Sequence record: AP018399.1
Direction: 5' to 3' (one strand)
DNA length: 64,000 nucleotides
Part shown: positions 1-8,109 of the stretch, one piece after another
How the letters are laid out: every line of letters starts with the position of its first letter
How positions within the stretch are numbered: position 1 is the first letter of the stretch
Notes under the pieces: model-generated
Seen by the model: the letters and a program-made list of their open reading frames with translations, nothing else
Told to the model about the DNA's origin: nothing
Database searches by the model: none
Made by a program: the position numbers and the translations under genes

Positions 1-253
1 CGGCCATACCCATCGTCGTTTCGATGCTGATGTAGCCGCTCTTACTCTTGGCCGACAAGTCCTTAATCAATTGGCTTGCTCGTAGCGTCTGATAGTTCTC
101 GTCATTCCAGACCGCGTAGGAGTAGATGAGCCAGTCTTCCGGTTGGTACTCCGCGACGATGGAGTCAAGCTTGTCGAAATTGATGTAAGTATCCATCTGG
201 TTCCAATGCGGAATGATGGTGCTTTCAAGGTCTAGGGCTAGCAGGGTTTTCAT
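1..253 (-). CDS. Partial CDS running off the window edge; possible HAD-like hydrolase
   Basis: Not in ORF track. ATG at 253 overlaps the TGA of the upstream gene (ATGA); reads MKTLLALDLESTIIPHWNQMDTYINF...; DLEST resembles HAD motif I (DxD/ExT). Confidence 0.5.
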   Translation of the reverse strand, partial: MKTLLALDLESTIIPHWNQMDTYINFDKLDSIVAEYQPEDWLIYSYAVWNDENYQTLRASQLIKDLSAKSKSGYISIETTMGMA

Positions 254-795
254 TCGGATTCCTCTGTGGCGATTTCCACACGCGGTTCGGTTACCGTGCA
301 GAAGTATCCGAGCTTTTCGTTGTCCACGATGGCGTCCGGATAGCCTTGAGCCTCAATCTTTTCACTCAACAATCCACCACCACGAACCTGTGTTGTCTTG
401 GTGATGTAGGTTCCCTTGGGGATTTCAATTTCGTTGAGTGACTTGAACTTACTCTTGGTGATGAACTTGGTCTGGAAGGTGTGCGTCTTGGCTGGGCCAA
501 GCGTCACAATCTCGCCCGTCATCTTGACGTACTTACTTAGATTTTCTTCTGACAGAAGAGCAGACTTCATAGTGAAGGTGTTCTTCTTGTGGTCATACGA
601 AGCACCCGTCACGATGTACACGGGTTCCACTGCCTCAATGTCTGTACACGTCACCGACACCAATTCGTTGTTGTGAAACAGTTCCTTGTCACCATACTGA
701 GCCTTGAATGGCTTGATGATACGGCCATTGGTCTGTTCATGACGTTCCCGCGCTTCAACCATGCGGGCATAAACACTCTTAAATTCTTCGGTCAT
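250..795 (-). CDS. Hypothetical protein
   Basis: 181-aa ORF in a run of overlapping minus-strand genes; no recognised motif. Confidence 0.75.
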   Translation of the reverse strand: MTEEFKSVYARMVEARERHEQTNGRIIKPFKAQYGDKELFHNNELVSVTCTDIEAVEPVYIVTGASYDHKKNTFTMKSALLSEENLSKYVKMTGEIVTLGPAKTHTFQTKFITKSKFKSLNEIEIPKGTYITKTTQVRGGGLLSEKIEAQGYPDAIVDNEKLGYFCTVTEPRVEIATEESE

Positions 796-1145
796 TGTGG
801 GATTTCGATGTTGATGTTCACGTCCACATAATGGTCGGGGAAACGTGATTGTAGTACGTTACGAATCAAATCTTGGAATGCGTCAACATCGACTTCTCCA
901 TCCTCTTCCGGAAGATTGAAGTCCATTGCCAGTACGGTATCTCCGGGCACAATGTTGATATCACCGCGACCATTAACCAGATACTTTGCATTATCTTGAC
1001 TCAAGATTTCCTTAAGACCACCAGAGCCTTTGGTGTCATATGTGTAAATCTTAAGGTTGTCGCGGACGGTGAACTCTTGCGTACCAGTCTTCTTGGTTAC
1101 AACAGTTCCGTCAGGAATGTATTTGGCTTCAAGTAGTAGTTTCAT
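792..1145 (-). CDS. Hypothetical protein
   Basis: ORF track 792..1190; ATG at 1145 (MKLLLEAKY) preferred; ATGA overlap with next gene. Confidence 0.7.
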   Translation of the reverse strand: MKLLLEAKYIPDGTVVTKKTGTQEFTVRDNLKIYTYDTKGSGGLKEILSQDNAKYLVNGRGDINIVPGDTVLAMDFNLPEEDGEVDVDAFQDLIRNVLQSRFPDHYVDVNINIEIPQ

Positions 1146-1249
1146 TCTGGCTCTTCTTGTATAGGTTCTTACAATACCAAATGACTCCACCCAACACTGC
1201 GAAGGGTAGAGCCATGATGGTTAGCAGCCCACCGGCTAGGGCATACAAT

Positions 1250-1663
1250 TTAATTATTTCTAGCGTGTCGCTCACTGGCGATTTCCTTTAGTTCCTCAAA
1301 TCTGACGAACTCAAAGTAAGGCGGATGTTCCGTCTCACTCATGAATCCATCTTGGATTTCCGTTTCATAATCATATTCTACCAGCTTGAACGTGTAATCT
1401 CTATAGTTCGGGTTCAGGAGGTACGGACGACTGGAAACGGACTTGATGGTAAGCTCTTCGCCTAGCACCAAATCCTCGTAGTCGTCATCGTTCACGCGAG
1501 TGACCCTGACTTTCTCGCCAACCAACTCTTCGCCCAATTTGGCGAAGATGAACTCGACCCACACTTCACGGGAGAGATTCTTGATTAGCTGTTCGCCGCG
1601 AGGGGTCTTGGCGAATCTTTCATACTCATCTTTCAGTTCAGGATTCCACTCGCTCATAGCCAC
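1250..1663 (-). CDS. Hypothetical protein
   Basis: 137-aa ORF overlapping the upstream stop. Confidence 0.7.
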   Translation of the reverse strand: MAMSEWNPELKDEYERFAKTPRGEQLIKNLSREVWVEFIFAKLGEELVGEKVRVTRVNDDDYEDLVLGEELTIKSVSSRPYLLNPNYRDYTFKLVEYDYETEIQDGFMSETEHPPYFEFVRFEELKEIASERHARNN

Positions 1664-1995
1664 TTCTTATCCATGTAAACATTGCGTTGGATGCAATCGG
1701 TATCCCGGCCGAAGCCACAGATGTGGGTACCATCCATCTTGTACAAATCGTAATTGGAAACTTTGTTCATCGCGTTGAAGGTCTTGACCAGCAGCACAAG
1801 TTCGTCTTTCTTGAACATCGGTTCCCGCAAGGTCACGATGGTCCGATTACGTTGGTGGTCCCAATCGTAATCGTATGCTTCTTGGTCTTTGACTGCATAG
1901 GTTTTGTAAGTGGTAACGGTCAGTGAAGAGAGGATGGTTTCCCTCTTCACCTGACCGCAATGCTTACGTAGCGGATTGGGTTGTTCGTCGCTCAT
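1654..1995 (-). CDS. Hypothetical protein
   Basis: ORF track 1654..2100 overlaps the helicase; ATG at 1995 (MSDEQPNPL) directly follows the helicase stop. Confidence 0.7.
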   Translation of the reverse strand: MSDEQPNPLRKHCGQVKRETILSSLTVTTYKTYAVKDQEAYDYDWDHQRNRTIVTLREPMFKKDELVLLVKTFNAMNKVSNYDLYKMDGTHICGFGRDTDCIQRNVYMDKKWL

Positions 1996-1997
1996 AA

Positions 1998-3677
1998 TTA
2001 CATTTCCGTGTATGCGTCTTTCCACCACTTCGGAATCATGTACTTCGAACGTCGGTACAGGTTTTCCCATGCCGAGTCCAGAATGTAGACGTGACCCCAA
2101 TCTTCCGGGCTACGAACCACGCGACCGCCGCCCTGAATGATGGCGATGAGCGCTTGGATGCTGTACCAAGTGTTCGAAAGCGACATACGCTTCTTCACCC
2201 ATGCATCGCCGAGGTACGGATACGGAACCTTCGCGAACAGCGCAAAGCGACCCTTGTCACCCTTCAAGTCCAGACCTTCGGTGACAGACGGTGAAATCAG
2301 GAGCTTCGGGATTCCATCATCAACTTGGAAGTCGTTGATTACTTGGTCACGGGTATACCCCGACTCTGGATTGTGGTGCATGATTTGATGTGGAATCTTG
2401 CCGCTCAATTCCTTCACCAGCCATGCGGCAACTTGGAAGCTACCGGTATGGATGACGCCAGTTTCGTCCGGGTGAACGTCACGGCACAGCTTGGTCACAC
2501 GCTCAATCATTTTCTTGCGTTCAGCACGAGCTACCGGGGTATCATCTGACCAGCCGAACGTCATCTTGATGGTCGGCATGTAGATAACCGGACGGTTGTC
2601 CTTCGGGAACTCTGACGGAATCGAAATGAAAGCCGTCTTGTCTGGGTCGATGCCCAAATCCGAGCAATACGAATCCTTGTCCAGAATCGTGGACGACATG
2701 AACAGGAACTTGTCAGCCATCGGCTCAACCAGTTCCTTGAAAATGTGGCGACCGTACAGTTCCTTGAACTTGAAGCTGGTCTTGCTTTCGTTCACCAGAA
2801 CGTAGCGACTATCAACTTCGCCAATGTCCTTGGAAATTAGCTGTTCGATGATGGCCTGACGATGTTCCTTCAACTCACGCAAATCCTTGATGGAACGCTG
2901 TTCGTCCATCGACAGGCGACGGCCGGGTTCGAATTCCATTTCAGTCAGGATGCGCTGAACATCCGGCGTCGATTTGGAAATCTTGTCCGTCACGGCCGGG
3001 ATGTAAATCTTGCGAATCCACTCCATCGCTTCGTAGATGCTCTTCGGCACTTGAAAGCGGATGTTCAGTCGCTTGCAGCGCATTTCGCTGAAAACAATCG
3101 AATTGAATTCGGTCAGGTGATGTTCCAGAGTGTGGGCTTCGTCAAACACCAGCAGCTTACGGCTACACACCGGACCATCGTCCGAAGCGACGTACTTGAA
3201 CAGGTTCAAGGCCAGCGTGTAGTTCAACACCACATTCGGAGCCATCGGCATACGCTGGATAGCGTCGCGGTGCGGACAGTTCGCACACTGCGGCTTGATA
3301 TCCGCGCCAATGTCGCAGTTGGTGTTCTTGCTTTCGCACTGGTAGTTGGACTTACCGTACAGGGTGTGCAGAAGATGCTTGTCGAACGACTCTTCGTACT
3401 GCTTCTGTAGGATTTTCTGCGGGGTCAGCAGGTAGGAATCACCGAACGAACGCGAGAACCAACCGCTCAGGTTGAGCGCCAGCGGAGACTTACCACCACC
3501 AACCGGGACTTCGCAAATGATGTAGCGGATATCAGGGCCAAGACTCTGGACCCAATCCTGAATGATTTCCTGCGACACACGCGGCGGGAACTCCCCGAAC
3601 GGCCAGAAGGAGAGGATATCTTCCTTGTCCAACTGGTTCAGGTCACGGGTGTTGCCGATATTACGCTGCATGGTCAT
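1998..3677 (-). CDS. SF2 DinG/Rad3(XPD)-like ATP-dependent DNA helicase
   Basis: Walker A PVGGGKS, DEAH, Cys cluster (CESKNTNC...CANC, likely Fe-S), SVTEGLDLKG, QGGGRVVRSPEDWGHVYILD; AAGGAA RBS before ATG at 3677. Confidence 0.9.
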   Translation of the reverse strand: MTMQRNIGNTRDLNQLDKEDILSFWPFGEFPPRVSQEIIQDWVQSLGPDIRYIICEVPVGGGKSPLALNLSGWFSRSFGDSYLLTPQKILQKQYEESFDKHLLHTLYGKSNYQCESKNTNCDIGADIKPQCANCPHRDAIQRMPMAPNVVLNYTLALNLFKYVASDDGPVCSRKLLVFDEAHTLEHHLTEFNSIVFSEMRCKRLNIRFQVPKSIYEAMEWIRKIYIPAVTDKISKSTPDVQRILTEMEFEPGRRLSMDEQRSIKDLRELKEHRQAIIEQLISKDIGEVDSRYVLVNESKTSFKFKELYGRHIFKELVEPMADKFLFMSSTILDKDSYCSDLGIDPDKTAFISIPSEFPKDNRPVIYMPTIKMTFGWSDDTPVARAERKKMIERVTKLCRDVHPDETGVIHTGSFQVAAWLVKELSGKIPHQIMHHNPESGYTRDQVINDFQVDDGIPKLLISPSVTEGLDLKGDKGRFALFAKVPYPYLGDAWVKKRMSLSNTWYSIQALIAIIQGGGRVVRSPEDWGHVYILDSAWENLYRRSKYMIPKWWKDAYTEM

Positions 3678-3700
3678 GAGGTTCCTTTGAATGTCCAAGA

Positions 3701-3729
3701 AGTATAAGACAGACAAGCGCCTAAGTCAA
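3701..3729 (-). promoter_or_regulatory. sigma70-type promoter for the helicase operon
   Basis: Minus strand TTGACT-N17-TATACT. Confidence 0.7.
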
Positions 3730-3773
3730 GGAAAAATTATTGGGAAGAGTCTTAAAGAAATTATTCTCAGGGC

Positions 3774-4163
3774 AATAAACCCCCCGTTCTCACTCTCCCT
3801 GATGGATAAAACGAACATTTCTTTCAAATATTCTACCAATGGGATTGCATGAGACGGATACCTCACCCAATTTATTCAACGCCCTACTGACGCTTAAGCC
3901 ATAGCTCTAAATTGTTTGAGGTCGGAGACTGACGGTAGGATTTGTTGTCTTGTCAAGTCTCGGTTACGGGTTGTCTAGCCAGCGCCGCTAGGGGAGTCAT
4001 TCCCTTCTCTTTGTATTCACGGCCAGAAATAACCTTTCGGTCAGGTGTCGTTTTAGCTGGTTTGTATGTTGCGGTAACTCGCAGCTTAGAAACTTCGGAC
4101 GGCGTAACCTTGCGGTCGGGCCACCCTCTTTGAATCTAAGCCCACATGGGCGGGGGGTTTATT
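3774..4163 (-). ncRNA. Candidate structured non-coding RNA (or origin) closed by a 13-bp inverted repeat
   Basis: AATAAACCCCCCG (3774-3786) pairs perfectly with CGGGGGGTTTATT (4151-4163); internal GNRA-capped hairpins on the minus strand; no credible ORF. Confidence 0.4.
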
Positions 4164-4361
4164 TCAATCAGTCTTTCTCTGATACGCACCCAACGGACAG
4201 TAGTGTTTAGCGTGTTGTCCGTTCCTTCACGGGTACCAATGACTCATAGTACCATTAGCATTCTCAATTAAATAAAGCGTTCTAAGAGCGTTCTCGACGC
4301 GAATGCTAACATAAAGCCCACTCTCATTGCAAGGTGGGCATATGGGTCTAAAGACTAGGGA

Positions 4362-5417
4362 TTAATATTGACGTAGAGTGTCACGTACACCCTGACGACG
4401 TGCATGAGTCTTGTCGGCTGAGCGGTCAAGAGATTTGAAGTCTACACGGCTATCAAAGGCATCGTCAATCTGCTGCAATAGTTCATCAGCATTGTTCGCA
4501 TCAGGGAAGGAACGAATGACAGATGGGACAATGGTCGTTAGAAGCTGGTATGCATCATCGGATAGGTCTTCCTGACGAGGCTTCTTACCATTCTTCAACA
4601 TGGTGTATGTGGCTTGAGGTAGGTTCTTCATCATATCCCATACCTGACGACCCTTCTCAGTACGGTTACGAGAAGATGGGTGGATAGCAAATAGGATACG
4701 GTTGATGTTACGGGCAGTGTTACCAGCCGAGTGAGTAGCCCACTGGTAGAAGCCGGGGATTAGGGTCTTGACACGGGCTGGGTCAAGAGCGTTGATTTTA
4801 CCAACAAATGAGTCCCAAGCACCCTTGTTGAATCCACCGGTACGAGGGTCGATGAATCCTAGAGATTCCAAACGTGCTAGGCGGTCCGGATTCTTTTCCT
4901 TCATTGCCTGAACGTAAGAAGCACGTTCACGATGGTTTTCAGCACGGTCACGGATACCGTTCAGGATGGCGATATCTTCCTGCTCAAGCTCACGAGCCTG
5001 AGCAACCGCTTTCAATGTATCTTCATCTAGAGTTTCAAGATATTCGCGGGTAGCTTCATCGGTAACATCCATGAAGAAACGGCGAAGAGCCTTGTAACCC
5101 TGACTAGCAGCCTTAGTTAGATTTGACTCACCGGTACCACGCGACGGAGCGGCTAGCGACTGGCGCAGTTCCGAACCGCGAGCGGTCGGGACAACCATTG
5201 AACCTTTCTGCTGTAGGAAACCCTTCTTGGTAAACCAATTGGTAATGTAGTCAGTGATTTCATCCTGACCCGGCTTCACCGTGCGACGGTTTAGTAGGCC
5301 GACTAGCTTCTGTGCAGACGGTGCTTCCTGTCCAGTATCGCGCTGGAAATCCTGAGCAAACTGGTTGTAGACGTTAGCGTTGTTAGAAGCTTCGATTAGA
5401 TACTGTACAAATCGCAT
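4362..5417 (-). CDS. Putative internal head protein with capsid-targeting-like N-terminus
   Basis: N-terminus MRFVQYLIE-A resembles T4 IP targeting sequence MKTYQEFIAE; TAAATA late promoter at 5442-5447. Confidence 0.55.
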   Translation of the reverse strand: MRFVQYLIEASNNANVYNQFAQDFQRDTGQEAPSAQKLVGLLNRRTVKPGQDEITDYITNWFTKKGFLQQKGSMVVPTARGSELRQSLAAPSRGTGESNLTKAASQGYKALRRFFMDVTDEATREYLETLDEDTLKAVAQARELEQEDIAILNGIRDRAENHRERASYVQAMKEKNPDRLARLESLGFIDPRTGGFNKGAWDSFVGKINALDPARVKTLIPGFYQWATHSAGNTARNINRILFAIHPSSRNRTEKGRQVWDMMKNLPQATYTMLKNGKKPRQEDLSDDAYQLLTTIVPSVIRSFPDANNADELLQQIDDAFDSRVDFKSLDRSADKTHARRQGVRDTLRQY

Positions 5418-5440
5418 TGAAAGGGTTCCGGTAATACCCC

Positions 5441-6175
5441 TTATTTATTCAACGGCTGCGGAGCCTTGATGATTTCGTATAGGGTCTTGGCGTCGTTGAT
5501 ATCTTCAATAGGTTTCGGGATGGATTTCATGTCCAGAATTTCTTCGGACTGTTCACGAATGAACTCAACCCACTTGTCGCCCTTGAGATTGGTGTTGTGT
5601 AGGAGTGCCTTATAAATTTCCGGCTTCTTGAATGAACCACCGGCCACACCATCTGGATTACGGTACTCAGTTTTCTTACCTTTCTGGATAGCTGGGTAAA
5701 CTAGAGCAGCCGCTTTCTGCTTAACTTCGGTTGGCTGATAGATTCGTAGTTCTGGAATCTGGACTCCGGAAATATCATCCGAAGCTCGGAATCTATTGTA
5801 AATTGCACGACGCAGTAGGGTACCAAAGGTTACCAAGTCGATGAGTGGACCGGCTGCTGATGAATAGCTGTACCCTTCAATGGCTACGACGATACCCTTT
5901 GATGAATCACAGAAAATGTCGATATCTTCCGAAATGGTATCCACGATACGACTGAAATGTCCAAGCTTACGAAGCTCAAGTTCACTGTGGGTCAGGTCAC
6001 CCTCAATCTCATCGAACACACGAATGCGAACACCTTGGTCTTCACATTCTTGGAACCAACGCTTCAATTCACCCTTCTTGGTGTGAGCGACAGTTGGAGT
6101 CGTGTAAACGAACTTCTTATCGTTCACAACCATTGCAGTACAGCTTAGGGAAGGGTCAATTGCCACATAGTTCAT
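5441..6175 (-). CDS. ruvC: RuvC-like Holliday junction resolvase
   Basis: VAIDPSLSCTA, VAIEGYSY, C-terminal DINDA acidic catalytic pattern. Confidence 0.8.
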   Translation of the reverse strand: MNYVAIDPSLSCTAMVVNDKKFVYTTPTVAHTKKGELKRWFQECEDQGVRIRVFDEIEGDLTHSELELRKLGHFSRIVDTISEDIDIFCDSSKGIVVAIEGYSYSSAAGPLIDLVTFGTLLRRAIYNRFRASDDISGVQIPELRIYQPTEVKQKAAALVYPAIQKGKKTEYRNPDGVAGGSFKKPEIYKALLHNTNLKGDKWVEFIREQSEEILDMKSIPKPIEDINDAKTLYEIIKAPQPLNK

Positions 6176-6360
6176 TAGTACACTCTCGCCATTGTTGGCG
6201 GTTTCGAACCTTCGTCCTTCAACCGCTTCTCAATAAAATTACTGATTCTCTGTCTTTCATGGAACGTTGTCTCCATCATGTCAAAGTATTGGATAGCCCC
6301 TCGCATGAAGTAGACAAGTTCTACGGCTTCGTCCACGATTTTCGTTCGTGAATCCATCAA
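6175..6360 (-). CDS. Baseplate hub assembly catalyst (gp51-like)
   Basis: 61 aa directly after the gp26-like gene; Y..MM..T..ER..I...I.KR pattern. Confidence 0.6.
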   Translation of the reverse strand: MMDSRTKIVDEAVELVYFMRGAIQYFDMMETTFHERQRISNFIEKRLKDEGSKPPTMARVY

Positions 6361-6380
6361 GTCCGCATAAACTTTACCGA

Positions 6381-7220
6381 TTAGTTTTGCGTCTTTGGAC
6401 TTGATGGCGGAATAAAAAAAGCTGTTGGGTTGAGTTCAGTAGTCAACTCATTTGAGTGCTTACACTTGCTGCACTTGGCGTTGTACTTGAAGGTCGGACC
6501 CCAATCCTGTAGACCAGCTACAGCCTTGGTGATGAGTTCAGTGTCGCTACGCGGAATGTGGTTCAACCATTCCTTAATGAATTCACGCTGTTCTTCACTG
6601 GTGTTTTCAACTTCACCCACCGCTGCGATGACTGATGAGAACGAATCTAGAACATATTCTTCAAGAACGTTCGGGTCGGTCAGGCTGTCAGCATTAATCT
6701 GCTGCATCATTAGGAAGTCACGGAAGGTAATCGGCTTCAAGCGGACGGTGTGACCATCGGTAGGAGTGGTCAACGAGAACTTGGCATCGAAGTCGGTAAC
6801 GTCGATTTCCTTTGAGCCGTTGGTAAAGTATTCAAGTGGAACACGGACTTCGTTCTCATGCTTACACTTTGGGTTCGAACAGGTAAACGGAACTTCCACA
6901 AATGGTCCGAAAGAAATTCGACGTAGGTGGGTCAGGATGAAGTCAACGTCAGAAGTCAACAGGTCAAGTGGCTTCTTGATGTTCGGGGAGCAACGCTGGA
7001 ACACACGTTCAATAGCTGTGCCTTGGAAGAGCATGTCCGGAGACTTCATCATAATCTCGTCGGTCATGGTCATCGGATTTAGGACGATTTCGCCGTTCAC
7101 AGTGTCTTCGGTCAGTTCACCGTTGGTGTAGAACTTACCTAGCGACGGTAGACGAATGGTTTCACCCGGCATACGGTTCAGACGGGCTAGAAGGGGATTG
7201 GCTGGTTTATTGTCACTCAT
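6381..7220 (-). CDS. Baseplate hub assembly protein (gp26-like)
   Basis: ANPLL..LPSLGKFY, MT..DEI.MK.PD.L, D.DFIL..LR..S.G, two CxxC pairs; ATG at 7220 follows TAAATA at 7250-7255. Confidence 0.75.
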   Translation of the reverse strand: MSDNKPANPLLARLNRMPGETIRLPSLGKFYTNGELTEDTVNGEIVLNPMTMTDEIMMKSPDMLFQGTAIERVFQRCSPNIKKPLDLLTSDVDFILTHLRRISFGPFVEVPFTCSNPKCKHENEVRVPLEYFTNGSKEIDVTDFDAKFSLTTPTDGHTVRLKPITFRDFLMMQQINADSLTDPNVLEEYVLDSFSSVIAAVGEVENTSEEQREFIKEWLNHIPRSDTELITKAVAGLQDWGPTFKYNAKCSKCKHSNELTTELNPTAFFIPPSSPKTQN

Positions 7221-7320
7221 GAATTTGCTCTCTAAAAGAATTATGGCTTTATTTAGAGTGGTGCCAAAACGCATTTTTGCACACAAATAAATAGTCCTAT
7301 ACTTATGTAGGTTCATAAAA

Positions 7321-8109
7321 ATGGCGAGTAGCACGTCGAGTCAAAACACCCAGCAGAACTACAACAATGCTAACGCAAACAATCCGGACGATAAGACCAC
7401 CGTTACTTCGGTGACAGAATCCCCCGGTGAATTCGTTAGCAGCGCTGACGCACGCAACCGCCAGTCTGTAGCTGCCGCTGCTGAGCGTGAGTGGTTGACG
7501 CGAGTTTCCGAAGCACCGAAAGATGGTGAATCACCGTATTCGAACGGTCGTAGCAACAAGATTCGCCTTGTCAGCACCATCGTTGCCAAGGAAGGGAATG
7601 GGCAGGTAAACACCGGTCTGGAACAGGTAGAGTTCAACCTGTCACCGGAAATCTCAGAATCAAAGCAGGTTATCTACGCGGAAATCGGTGACATTCGTCA
7701 GGCCGCGTCGATTCTAATTTATGGTGGCTCACCTAGCCGTAAGTGGTCAGTGAACGCCAAGTTCCTGTCTCGTACAGCCAAGGAAGCTGACCTGACATGG
7801 AAATCAGTTCAGCTAATGCGTTCATGGGCCAATCCGGATACCAATTATAAGTATGGTATCGACTCGGGTACCCCACACGTCCTTCGTCTCTACGGATATG
7901 GTCGTACTTGGCAGGGTATTCCAGTGGTGTTGTCATCTATCAACGTAGACTATCCAAGTGATATCGACTACATCCCGACCGCATATGGCACGAACGTCCC
8001 GGTCATCCAGAGCGTATCGTTCCAACTAACCGAAGCCCGTACACCTGACGACCTTCTAAAGAAGTTCGACCTAGAGAAGTTCAAGCTCGGCGTCCTACCG
8101 GAGTGGTAA
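7321..8109 (+). CDS. Baseplate-tail tube initiator / tube-fold protein
   Basis: Tube-like beta pattern (FNLSPEISESK...IY.GSPSR.W...AKF...; VVLSSINVDYPSDIDY) and position before the gp53-like gene. Confidence 0.55.
   Translation: MASSTSSQNTQQNYNNANANNPDDKTTVTSVTESPGEFVSSADARNRQSVAAAAEREWLTRVSEAPKDGESPYSNGRSNKIRLVSTIVAKEGNGQVNTGLEQVEFNLSPEISESKQVIYAEIGDIRQAASILIYGGSPSRKWSVNAKFLSRTAKEADLTWKSVQLMRSWANPDTNYKYGIDSGTPHVLRLYGYGRTWQGIPVVLSSINVDYPSDIDYIPTAYGTNVPVIQSVSFQLTEARTPDDLLKKFDLEKFKLGVLPEW

Follow-up and report, generated by a model that had tools for sequence, protein, structure and literature searches.

A putative large structured RNA gene upstream of the helicase gene in Xanthomonas jumbo phage XacN1 and its relatives

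Background

The genome of Xanthomonas phage XacN1, a 385-kb jumbo myovirus whose terminal repeats carry 56 transfer RNA (tRNA) genes (PMC5852040), contains a gap of ~640 bases upstream of its helicase gene (the ORF314-helicase gap, 3678-4361; ORF, open reading frame), and the question raised by this locus is whether the gap encodes anything, and if so, what. We analyzed a 64-kb stretch of DNA, hereafter the window, that is 100% identical to the XacN1 record (AP018399.1); all coordinates are window positions, equal to record positions minus 186000. This locus, an origin and an RNA of this kind all go unmentioned in the XacN1 genome paper and in a 2026 jumbo-phage review. An initial annotation of the window, made from its letters, had proposed a hairpin-dense minus-strand RNA of ~390 nt closed by a 13-bp inverted repeat, with a replication origin as the alternative. 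Here we present comparative evidence that the gap is conserved as an RNA structure, and that its assignment as a stand-alone, previously undescribed non-coding RNA gene, with a predicted length of ~525 nt, is well supported.

Comparative evidence for a structured RNA

A DNA search of GenBank phages recovered a matching gap in phage Xoo-sp13 and in the Stenotrophomonas phages RAS14 and CM1, with 70-78% identity mid-gap; RAS14 and CM1 are identical to each other across the region. The adjacent gene, ORF314, has 40 homologues in public assemblies (47-96% identity), and metagenomic contigs of soil, wastewater and groundwater origin, together with one NCBI assembly, provided 14 loci, of which 12 were aligned; the ORF314 products of 12 metagenomic contigs are 49-88% identical to that of XacN1. 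A gap is present in all 15 related phage loci examined, measuring 690-1160 nt where both genes were called, and wherever both were called the gene order is baseplate hub, two small genes, ORF314, gap, helicase. A homologous RNA on the minus strand, which is the sense of the flanking genes, was found in 13 sequences (alignment A3), at one copy per locus examined.

The consensus fold calculated with RNAalifold for these 13 sequences comprises 70 pairs, 43 of them changed on both sides in at least one sequence. After addition of a fifth pair in helix P1, the pairs of hairpin P8a and a long-range loop-loop pairing, the model has 74 pairs in 14 helical elements, 42 of them with two-sided changes, and 97.3% of its cells are canonical, versus 80.2 +/- 0.8% (maximum 82.9%) when columns are shuffled; sliding the partner by one or two columns leaves 0-84% canonical per helix. 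The 5' domain behaves in the same way when taken separately, with 96.2% of cells paired versus 82.4% in shuffled alignments (none of 500 shuffles as high), a covariation score of 0.479 versus 0.203, and only 25-43% pairing for slid partners. Cells with G-U outnumber those with A-C by 79 to 8, an excess that identifies the minus strand as the one that folds. The folding energy of that strand has a z-score of -3.2, with none of 100 shuffles as good, versus -1.1 for the plus strand. The compensatory changes that the initial annotation had suggested looking for in related phages are thus present above controls and on one strand, and the minus-strand RNA that it had proposed, in the generic sense of a structured non-coding RNA gene, is well supported by them.

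In nine of ten comparisons, conservation is higher for the RNA core than for the flanking genes at the DNA level, the exception being L022 (0.59 versus 0.58 and 0.66). The flanking genes, and the conservation values for three relatives, are as follows.

1998-3677, minus strand: helicase gene (ORF312), its ATG at the downstream side of the gap
4362-5417, minus strand: ORF314, its stop codon bordering the gap
Xoo-sp13: RNA core 0.92, ORF314 DNA 0.64, helicase DNA 0.68
L024: RNA core 0.90, ORF314 DNA 0.70, helicase DNA 0.76
RAS14: RNA core 0.71, ORF314 DNA 0.63, helicase DNA 0.62

This conservation has no codon periodicity, variable columns being distributed over the three phases as 44/78, 51/79 and 48/80, and no open frame is conserved across the lineages; antisense frames of 63 and 41 codons are broken elsewhere, as is the one feature that GenBank places inside the gap:

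3691-3852, plus strand: ORF313, a predicted reading frame of 53 amino acids

ORF313 overlaps, on the opposite strand, the predicted helicase promoter and the 3' part of the RNA, is closed in relatives, and is probably spurious. A short reading frame following a Shine-Dalgarno-like AGGGAG near the 3' end of the RNA was also considered, and is unconserved. A decayed gene, which the initial annotation had named as an outcome that would overturn its proposal, therefore finds no counterpart in the codon periodicity or in the reading frames. Taken together, the alignment shows the gap sequence to be conserved as a predicted RNA structure, and not as protein or as duplex DNA.

Predicted architecture

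The predicted RNA and its helices, in 5' to 3' order on the minus strand, are listed below.

3772..4296, minus strand: predicted extent of the RNA (~525 nt), bounded at the 5' end by the start expected from the promoter and at the 3' end by the U-rich tail that follows P5
4232..4253, minus strand: hairpin P1, GGUAC / GUACC (4253-4249 / 4236-4232), covarying
4245-4238, minus strand: loop of P1, GAGUCAUU, 5' partner in the loop-loop pairing
4231-4228 / 4188-4185, minus strand: P2, CGUG / UGCG, invariant, enclosing P3
4222-4217 / 4198-4193, minus strand: P3, its loop holding the conserved CACGYUAAAY
4183-4179 / 4171-4167, minus strand: hairpin P4, AUCAG / CUGAU, its 7-nt loop reading AGAAAGA in all but one of the 13 sequences
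4151..4163, minus strand: 5' arm of the closing stem P5, part of the 13-bp inverted repeat, core ACCCCCCG at 4158-4151
4146-4136 / 4089-4083 and 4068-4065, minus strand: P6, two-sided changes in 8 of 11 pairs
4082-4080 / 4073-4071, minus strand: hairpin P7 with loop AGUUAC, two-sided changes in 2 of 3 pairs
4060-4056 / 3983-3979, minus strand: P8, part of a central three-way domain (3979..4060)
4042-4039 / 4034-4031, minus strand: tetraloop hairpin P8a (GAAA in XacN1), central three-way domain
4023-4019 / 3988-3984, minus strand: P8', central three-way domain
4004-4002 / 3993-3991, minus strand: GGG / CCC hairpin, its loop AAUGACUC at 4001-3994 being the 3' partner in the loop-loop pairing
3961-3956 / 3930-3925, minus strand: P9, two-sided changes in 6 of 6 pairs
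3920-3909 / 3873-3862, minus strand: P10, two-sided changes in 4 of 4 pairs of its outer part
3854-3841 / 3799-3788, minus strand: P11, UCUCAU..UCCC / GGGA..GUGAGA, enclosing a variable AU-rich hairpin
3774..3786, minus strand: 3' arm of P5, core CGGGGGGU at 3786-3779, running into the tail UUUAUU and predicted to act as intrinsic terminator and 3' end

Comparative analysis shows a predicted architecture in which a 5' domain (P1-P4) precedes a multi-branched body (P6-P11) closed by the G/C-rich stem P5, with the loop-loop pairing tying both parts together; it likewise shows an RNA with a tertiary fold that is under strong selection. The perfect inverted repeat that forms P5 (3774-3786 / 4151-4163), first noticed in the initial annotation, is real, with 364 nt between its arms and its 8-bp core retained in 13 of 13 homologous sequences; by our own estimate the chance of a perfect 13-mer inverted repeat in ~650 nt is 0.003 (~2x10^5 position pairs x 4^-13). 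That core is invariant except for one compensatory change, A-U to C-G, in L016. P5 does close the body, as had been proposed, but the covarying 5' domain lies outside it, and the length of ~390 nt inferred from the stem is accordingly revised to a predicted ~525 nt, roughly from 4296 to 3772.

Covariation in the 5' domain is seen in P1 (GGUAC/GUACC, GAUAC/GUAUC, GGUGU/ACACC, CACCC/GGGUG), in P3 and in P4, the last two pairing in 100% of cells with two-sided changes in 4 of 6 and 4 of 5 pairs, respectively; P3 is the 8-bp stem originally noted at 4192/4216. The 8-bp pairing between the loop of P1 and that of the central hairpin was picked out by a blind scan over all column pairs; 93% of its cells are paired and four of its eight positions covary, a signal that is equally compatible with pairing within one molecule and between copies. 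Its variants include AGUC/GACU, UGUC/GACA, AAUC/GAUU and GGUC/GACC, and complementarity is preserved as UUGUCAUU/AAUGACAA in RAS14 and L021, UAAUCAUU/AAUGAUUA in the L022 group and UGGUC/GACCA in L016. Two hairpins of the initial annotation fall within the central domain and were borne out: ACC-GAAA-GGT (4031-4042) corresponds to P8a, which has covarying pairs and a GNRA loop in 12 of 13 sequences, and GGGA..TCCC (3991-4004) is the hairpin whose loop joins the long-range pairing. A third, CTAGC..GCTAG, pairs in only 69% of cells, and the same bases form the better supported P8 and P8'. The GACC-GCAA-GGTT hairpin (4106-4117) does exist in XacN1, but belongs to the variable, lineage-specific distal insert of P6 and is not shared even by L028, the closest relative.

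Folding each sequence by itself recovers P11 as the same closing helix every time, although the alignment-based fold had overlooked it; the letters of P11 differ by lineage (UCUCAU/GUGAGA, AGGU/ACCU, GUAUAC/GUGUAU, UUUUCA/UGAAAA), and its interior is 15-34% GC, versus 37-55% in the core and the P9-P10 segments. Several loops are invariant in sequence, namely AGAAAGA (in 12 of 13 sequences), CACGYUAAAY, AGUUAC, ACAAACC and ACGACACCU.

Transcription unit and expression

The elements predicted to delimit the transcription unit are these.

4316..4341, minus strand: terminator-like hairpin GCCCAC / GTGGGC at the end of ORF314, its stem covarying in L024, L025 and L026
4303..4332, minus strand: predicted sigma-70-like promoter of the RNA, with -35 TTGCAA (4332-4327), an 18-nt spacer and TG-extended -10 TAGCAT (4308-4303)
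4258..4294, minus strand: leader with three AGAAY(GC) direct repeats (starts 4294, 4283, 4264), between the predicted start and P1
3701..3729, minus strand: the helicase's own predicted sigma-70-like promoter, TTGACT, 17 nt, TATACT, ~50 nt past the U-rich tail of the RNA

The position of the upstream promoter places the predicted start of the RNA near 4296. This promoter is unique within the window; its exact form is found in XacN1 and its closest relatives, and 12 of 13 homologues have a sigma-70-like promoter ahead of P1 according to a scripted scan, the remaining one, L024, having a weaker TTGCAA / TAGTCT seen by eye only. The AGAAY array, also unique within the window, is carried by the first 40-100 nt of the RNA and consists of three to five repeats per homologue, with a spacing of 10-12 nt in most lineages and of 14-26 nt in RAS14 and L021. 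At the other end, an equivalent of the helicase promoter follows the G-run in 13 of 13 homologues and precedes the ribosome-binding site and ATG, with 10-12 of 12 consensus matches in ten homologues and nine in the L022 and L027 pair. An upstream promoter, a terminator-like P5 tail and a separate helicase promoter together suggest that the RNA is a separate unit of ~525 nt and not a leader.

The hairpin at 4316-4341 combines a covarying stem with a conserved loop that is the -35 element of the RNA promoter, so that terminator and promoter appear to share one sequence. It corresponds to a 6-bp stem originally noted at 4316/4334, which exists as a hairpin but lies outside the RNA. A further 9-bp stem reported at 4255/4301 is probably not RNA structure, since its upstream arm falls on the predicted -10 element and so precedes the predicted start.

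Expression of the RNA is weakly indicated by public sequencing data. In a wastewater metatranscriptome (X8), contig depth is 14-22 over 3564-4548 versus 0-13 in the other bins of a 5.9-kb region, and a DNA run (X1) has a flat depth of ~7; in an aquatic metatranscriptome (X19), the single contig within the 5.9 kb falls at 4004-4199, within the core. The X19 contig continues into an inverted copy of the P3 loop and looks like a snap-back product of a single-stranded template. A contig of a second wastewater RNA library (X18, 3874-4139) jumps to the opposite strand of 4193-4205, at the P3 hairpin. Both strand switches look like the type of artefact that is made by reverse transcription on a structured single strand.

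Relation to known RNAs

No Rfam 15 family, including RNase P, transfer-messenger RNA (tmRNA), group I and II introns, GOLLD, ROOL, OLE, HEARO and riboswitches, matched anywhere in the window at the gathering threshold. At E-values up to 10, positions 3500-4600 returned only chance-level small nucleolar and long non-coding RNA matches (12-17.5 bits versus thresholds of 42-50), one of them inside the gap proper, and eight homologous loci returned no match at E up to 1. ARAGORN detected no tRNA or tmRNA gene in the 64-kb window. These results agree with the initial annotation, which had recognized no signature of tRNA, tmRNA, RNase P or introns. RNase P RNA was considered, given the 56 tRNA genes of XacN1 and an AGAAAGA motif that recalls the P4 region of that RNA; it was ruled out, as the motif is the loop of a covarying hairpin and no RNase P model scores. 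The XacN1 RNA does share with RNase P RNA, group I/II introns and tmRNA a large multi-domain fold, long-range helices, GNRA loops and loop-loop contacts, but none of their models matches, and it interrupts no gene. Both neighbors are complete: ORF314 ends with a stop where called and the helicase has its own ribosome-binding site, ATG and promoter, which argues against a self-splicing intron of either group. A published catalogue of ~10,000 viral structured-RNA candidates (29-151 nt, from IMG/VR) mentions neither these hosts nor jumbo phages, and IMG/VR seems to be without this clade.

To our knowledge, few bacterial or phage RNAs longer than ~400 nt are this densely structured (ribosomal RNA, RNase P, tmRNA, self-splicing introns, OLE, GOLLD, ROOL and HEARO), and those whose nature is understood have proved to be ribozymes, cores of ribonucleoproteins or self-assembling particles, the others being still unexplained. 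The XacN1 RNA would represent a new family within the known large, ornate, phage-borne non-coding RNAs. It resembles GOLLD and ROOL in its size class (roughly 500-800 nt), its phage-borne location, its many covarying helices and conserved loops, its variable peripheral inserts, a poorly conserved linker and a covarying loop-loop pairing. It differs from them in matching no Rfam 15 model, in its helix layout, in its AGAAY leader, in having so far been found in one clade only, at one fixed locus between ORF314 and the helicase gene, and in having no tRNA gene in the 64-kb window. Loop pairings of ROOL and GOLLD that were initially detected as covariation turned out to link separate copies within cages made of RNA alone (bioRxiv 10.1101/2024.12.08.627333).

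Two systems of replication priming also invite comparison. The ColE1 RNA II transcript, ~550 nt long, must fold correctly in order to prime. Its length, its own promoter and a loop-loop pairing are features that the XacN1 RNA shares, and ColE1 also has a G-run in its critical step and needs a defined fold for function. However, the loop-loop partner of RNA II is a separate antisense RNA I. In the XacN1 RNA, which has a much more elaborate fold, the G-run is base-paired to an internal C-run and a terminator-like tail comes after it. A consensus scan of 3600-4500 found no plus-strand promoter-like site for a ColE1-type antisense regulator. In phage T4, oriF and oriG comprise a promoter and an AT-rich unwinding element, their R-loop being processed by RNase H and unwound by the UvsW helicase, while oriE combines an early promoter with evenly spaced 12-nt repeats; R-loop formation in T4 is independent of specific sequence (PMC3016281). 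The XacN1 locus resembles oriF and oriG in having a predicted promoter followed by an AT-rich stretch, oriE in having a predicted early-type promoter with short direct repeats evenly spaced in most lineages, and T4 origins generally in lying near recombination and helicase genes and near a switch of transcription direction. Unlike T4 origins, whose transcripts need no specific sequence or fold, it separates the repeats from the AT-rich stretch by ~450 nt of covarying structure, and this stretch is short (20-163 nt) and itself an RNA hairpin.

Possible roles of the RNA

We hold, with moderate confidence, that the locus is a stand-alone non-coding RNA gene of ~525 nt acting in trans as a folded RNA. 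A host-type sigma-70 RNA polymerase would start near 4296, so that the RNA would be made early; P5 and the U-rich tail would end the transcript near 3772, and the helicase would then be read from its own promoter. The RNA, compactly folded, would act in trans (the weakest step of the scheme), its invariant loops binding a partner, or the RNA assembling with its own copies or catalyzing a reaction, and P5 may double as a terminator and as a clamp on the body of the fold.

Several observations weigh against this interpretation. Action in trans, and the kind of partner, are our best guess, by analogy with other large ornate RNAs of bacteria and phages, and the evenly spaced AGAAY repeats and the AT-rich stretch would be better explained at the level of DNA. 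Both ends of the RNA are predictions only, and the U-tail after P5 is weak in RAS14, L021 and L024. P2 and P5 are invariant and so gain little or no support from covariation, leaving P5 to rest on conservation and complementarity. The 13 aligned sequences represent only ~8 independent lineages, and two related contigs (L015:4027-4944 and L023:4066-4993) hold different sequence in the same ORF314-helicase gap. As to expression, RNA libraries may contain phage DNA, the contigs extend over the flanking genes as well and run past both predicted ends, and the larger share of sampled words found for the gap in RNA runs (46-66%, versus at most 29% for the helicase) is confounded by the better conservation of the RNA relative to the genes.

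The main alternative, which we consider rather unlikely, is that the locus is a replication origin at which the structured RNA serves as primer or activating transcript: an early promoter would fire across an initiator-bound, iteron-like array, the transcript would fold like ColE1 RNA II, and an R-loop at the AT-rich stretch and G-run would be processed into a primer and removed by the adjacent helicase, much as at oriF, oriG and oriE of T4. Such an array could be seen in the three to five window-unique repeats just past the predicted start, whose 10-12 nt spacing in most lineages is about one helical turn, and an unwinding site in a segment of variable, AT-rich sequence (15-34% GC) directly preceding the invariant G6; most other helices drift while the C6 and G6 arms of P5 stay invariant, neighboring genes belong to DNA metabolism, transcription diverges 3 kb away, and the T4 origins and ColE1 RNA II provide precedents. 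Set against this, no known origin transcript needs a fold nearly as elaborate as this one, with its 14 helical elements, covarying loop-loop pairing and tetraloop that is largely conserved, and T4 R-loops form without specific sequence. The AT-rich part itself keeps a hairpin while its sequence changes, the G-run pairs with the RNA's own C-run ahead of a terminator-like tail, and repeat spacing is irregular in RAS14 and L021. GC skew, which the initial annotation had suggested as a means of recognizing an origin, has no inflection at the gap; the plus strand offers no promoter-like site for a ColE1-style antisense regulator, and a borderline RNase H3 match of ORF314, described below, is unsupported by Pfam or by fold search. 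The origin once offered in place of an RNA is thus displaced in that form, and lives on as a proposal for what the RNA does.

The RNA might instead act in cis, as an attenuator or riboswitch-like sensor of very large size, with P5 formation choosing between termination and read-through into the helicase gene. It does lie directly upstream of that gene on the same strand, and P5 with its U-rich tail is terminator-like, with an upstream arm 365-590 nt away, so that termination could depend on the fold; but the sigma-70-like promoter situated between terminator and helicase start in all 13 homologues would make the helicase independent of read-through. Known riboswitches and T-box leaders are moreover smaller by several fold, the element matches no cis-regulatory family of Rfam, and phages RsoM2USA and Tunturi_5, with a related helicase, are without any gap, all of which renders a helicase leader very improbable. 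That there is no functional RNA at all, and the gap is a gene that has decayed, an unannotated gene for a small protein or an element acting at the DNA level with incidental hairpins, strikes us as scarcely credible. Annotators did place ORF313 here, and stop-free stretches of 60-70 codons exist; yet substitutions are without codon periodicity, the antisense frames are interrupted in other lineages, complementarity survives sequence change in more than half of the modeled pairs, the ten-to-one preponderance of G-U over A-C is expected of RNA and not of duplex DNA, and the core is generally better conserved than the DNA of the neighboring proteins.

Returning to a trans-acting folded RNA and to the origin transcript alike, we tentatively suggest that this may be a new class of large ornate RNA private to a jumbo-phage clade: either one whose loop-loop pairing bridges copies as in ROOL and GOLLD cages, or a ribozyme, or else the first ColE1-like structured primer RNA at a phage origin, working with the neighboring helicase. 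In each case, unrelated structured sequence in the gap of L015 and L023 would make the locus a slot for interchangeable large RNAs. The system has practical advantages, including a clean comparative signal, a predicted promoter and terminator, and one copy per examined locus; cultivable phage-host pairs (XacN1 with Xanthomonas citri, Xoo-sp13 with X. oryzae, RAS14 and CM1 with Stenotrophomonas) together with the single-copy unit open the RNA to deletion, probing and purification. More generally, long unannotated gaps in jumbo phages can hide RNA genes missed by current annotation and by Rfam.

Distribution and genomic neighborhood

The RNA was found in one clade, consisting of Xanthomonas and Stenotrophomonas jumbo phages and their metagenomic relatives. 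In the distant jumbo phages RsoM2USA and Tunturi_5 the related helicase is ~27% identical, and no gap lies upstream of it. An exact-motif scan of IMG/VR with a 16-mer from P7 gave ten matches, all attributable to chance, and a pattern of 25 specified bases spanning P4-P5 gave none in viral (IMG/VR), JGI metagenome or GTDB genome sets, collections that seem to be without this clade; a protein search of IMG/VR with ORF314 returned no match.

The different sequence in L015 and L023 contains blocks conserved between both contigs and local hairpins with compensatory changes (n=2 sequences). It too is closed by a long-range stem, AAGGCCA / UGGCCUU, after which comes a U-rich tail immediately ahead of the helicase promoter. 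This sequence was matched neither by the 5'-domain covariance model of the XacN1 type at E-values up to 1 nor by the central-domain model at E-values up to 10, and a motif of this variant was absent from the viral and metagenome collections scanned. The variant may be either a homologue that has diverged to an extreme degree or a further class of RNA occupying this slot.

The minus strand carries all genes from 250 to 7334, and transcription diverges at ~7.3 kb, 3 kb from the gap; neighboring genes of DNA metabolism comprise the helicase, the weakly RuvC-like ORF315 and a recombination endonuclease. ORF314 encodes a conserved 351-amino-acid protein that always adjoins the RNA and belongs to no Pfam or PHROG family. 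In its AlphaFold model (predicted local distance difference test score, pLDDT, 72) helices predominate, and residues 35-88 weakly resemble a winged helix. A role as RNase H was considered from a borderline profile match to an RNase H3 chain (PDB 4py5, E = 0.004; motifs LG[FV]xDxK and NINR[IL]L), which is unconfirmed: Pfam gave no support across 26 homologues, and a Foldseek search with the AlphaFold model gave a best E of 0.25, with weak MarR-like winged-helix matches only.

The next gene upstream, ORF315 (5441-6175, minus strand), has a weak match over residues 1-157 to a RuvC-like Holliday-junction resolvase family (phrog_159, E = 1.4e-11), with no Pfam match above threshold and no PDB sequence match. 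An RNA-guided nuclease formed by ORF315 and the downstream RNA was entertained and dropped, given that the resolvase-family match is weak and PDB holds nothing similar.

Two variations in gene content were noted around the locus. L027 carries, between its ORF314 homologue and the RNA (L027:4052-4684), an extra gene of 210 amino acids belonging to no Pfam family, the RNA and its promoter region being otherwise intact. Downstream of the helicase, contigs of the two wastewater RNA libraries (X8, X18) omit the 677 bases at 1320-1996 and have 15 other letters instead, suggesting that close relatives of XacN1 exist without most of the small genes ORF310 and ORF311.

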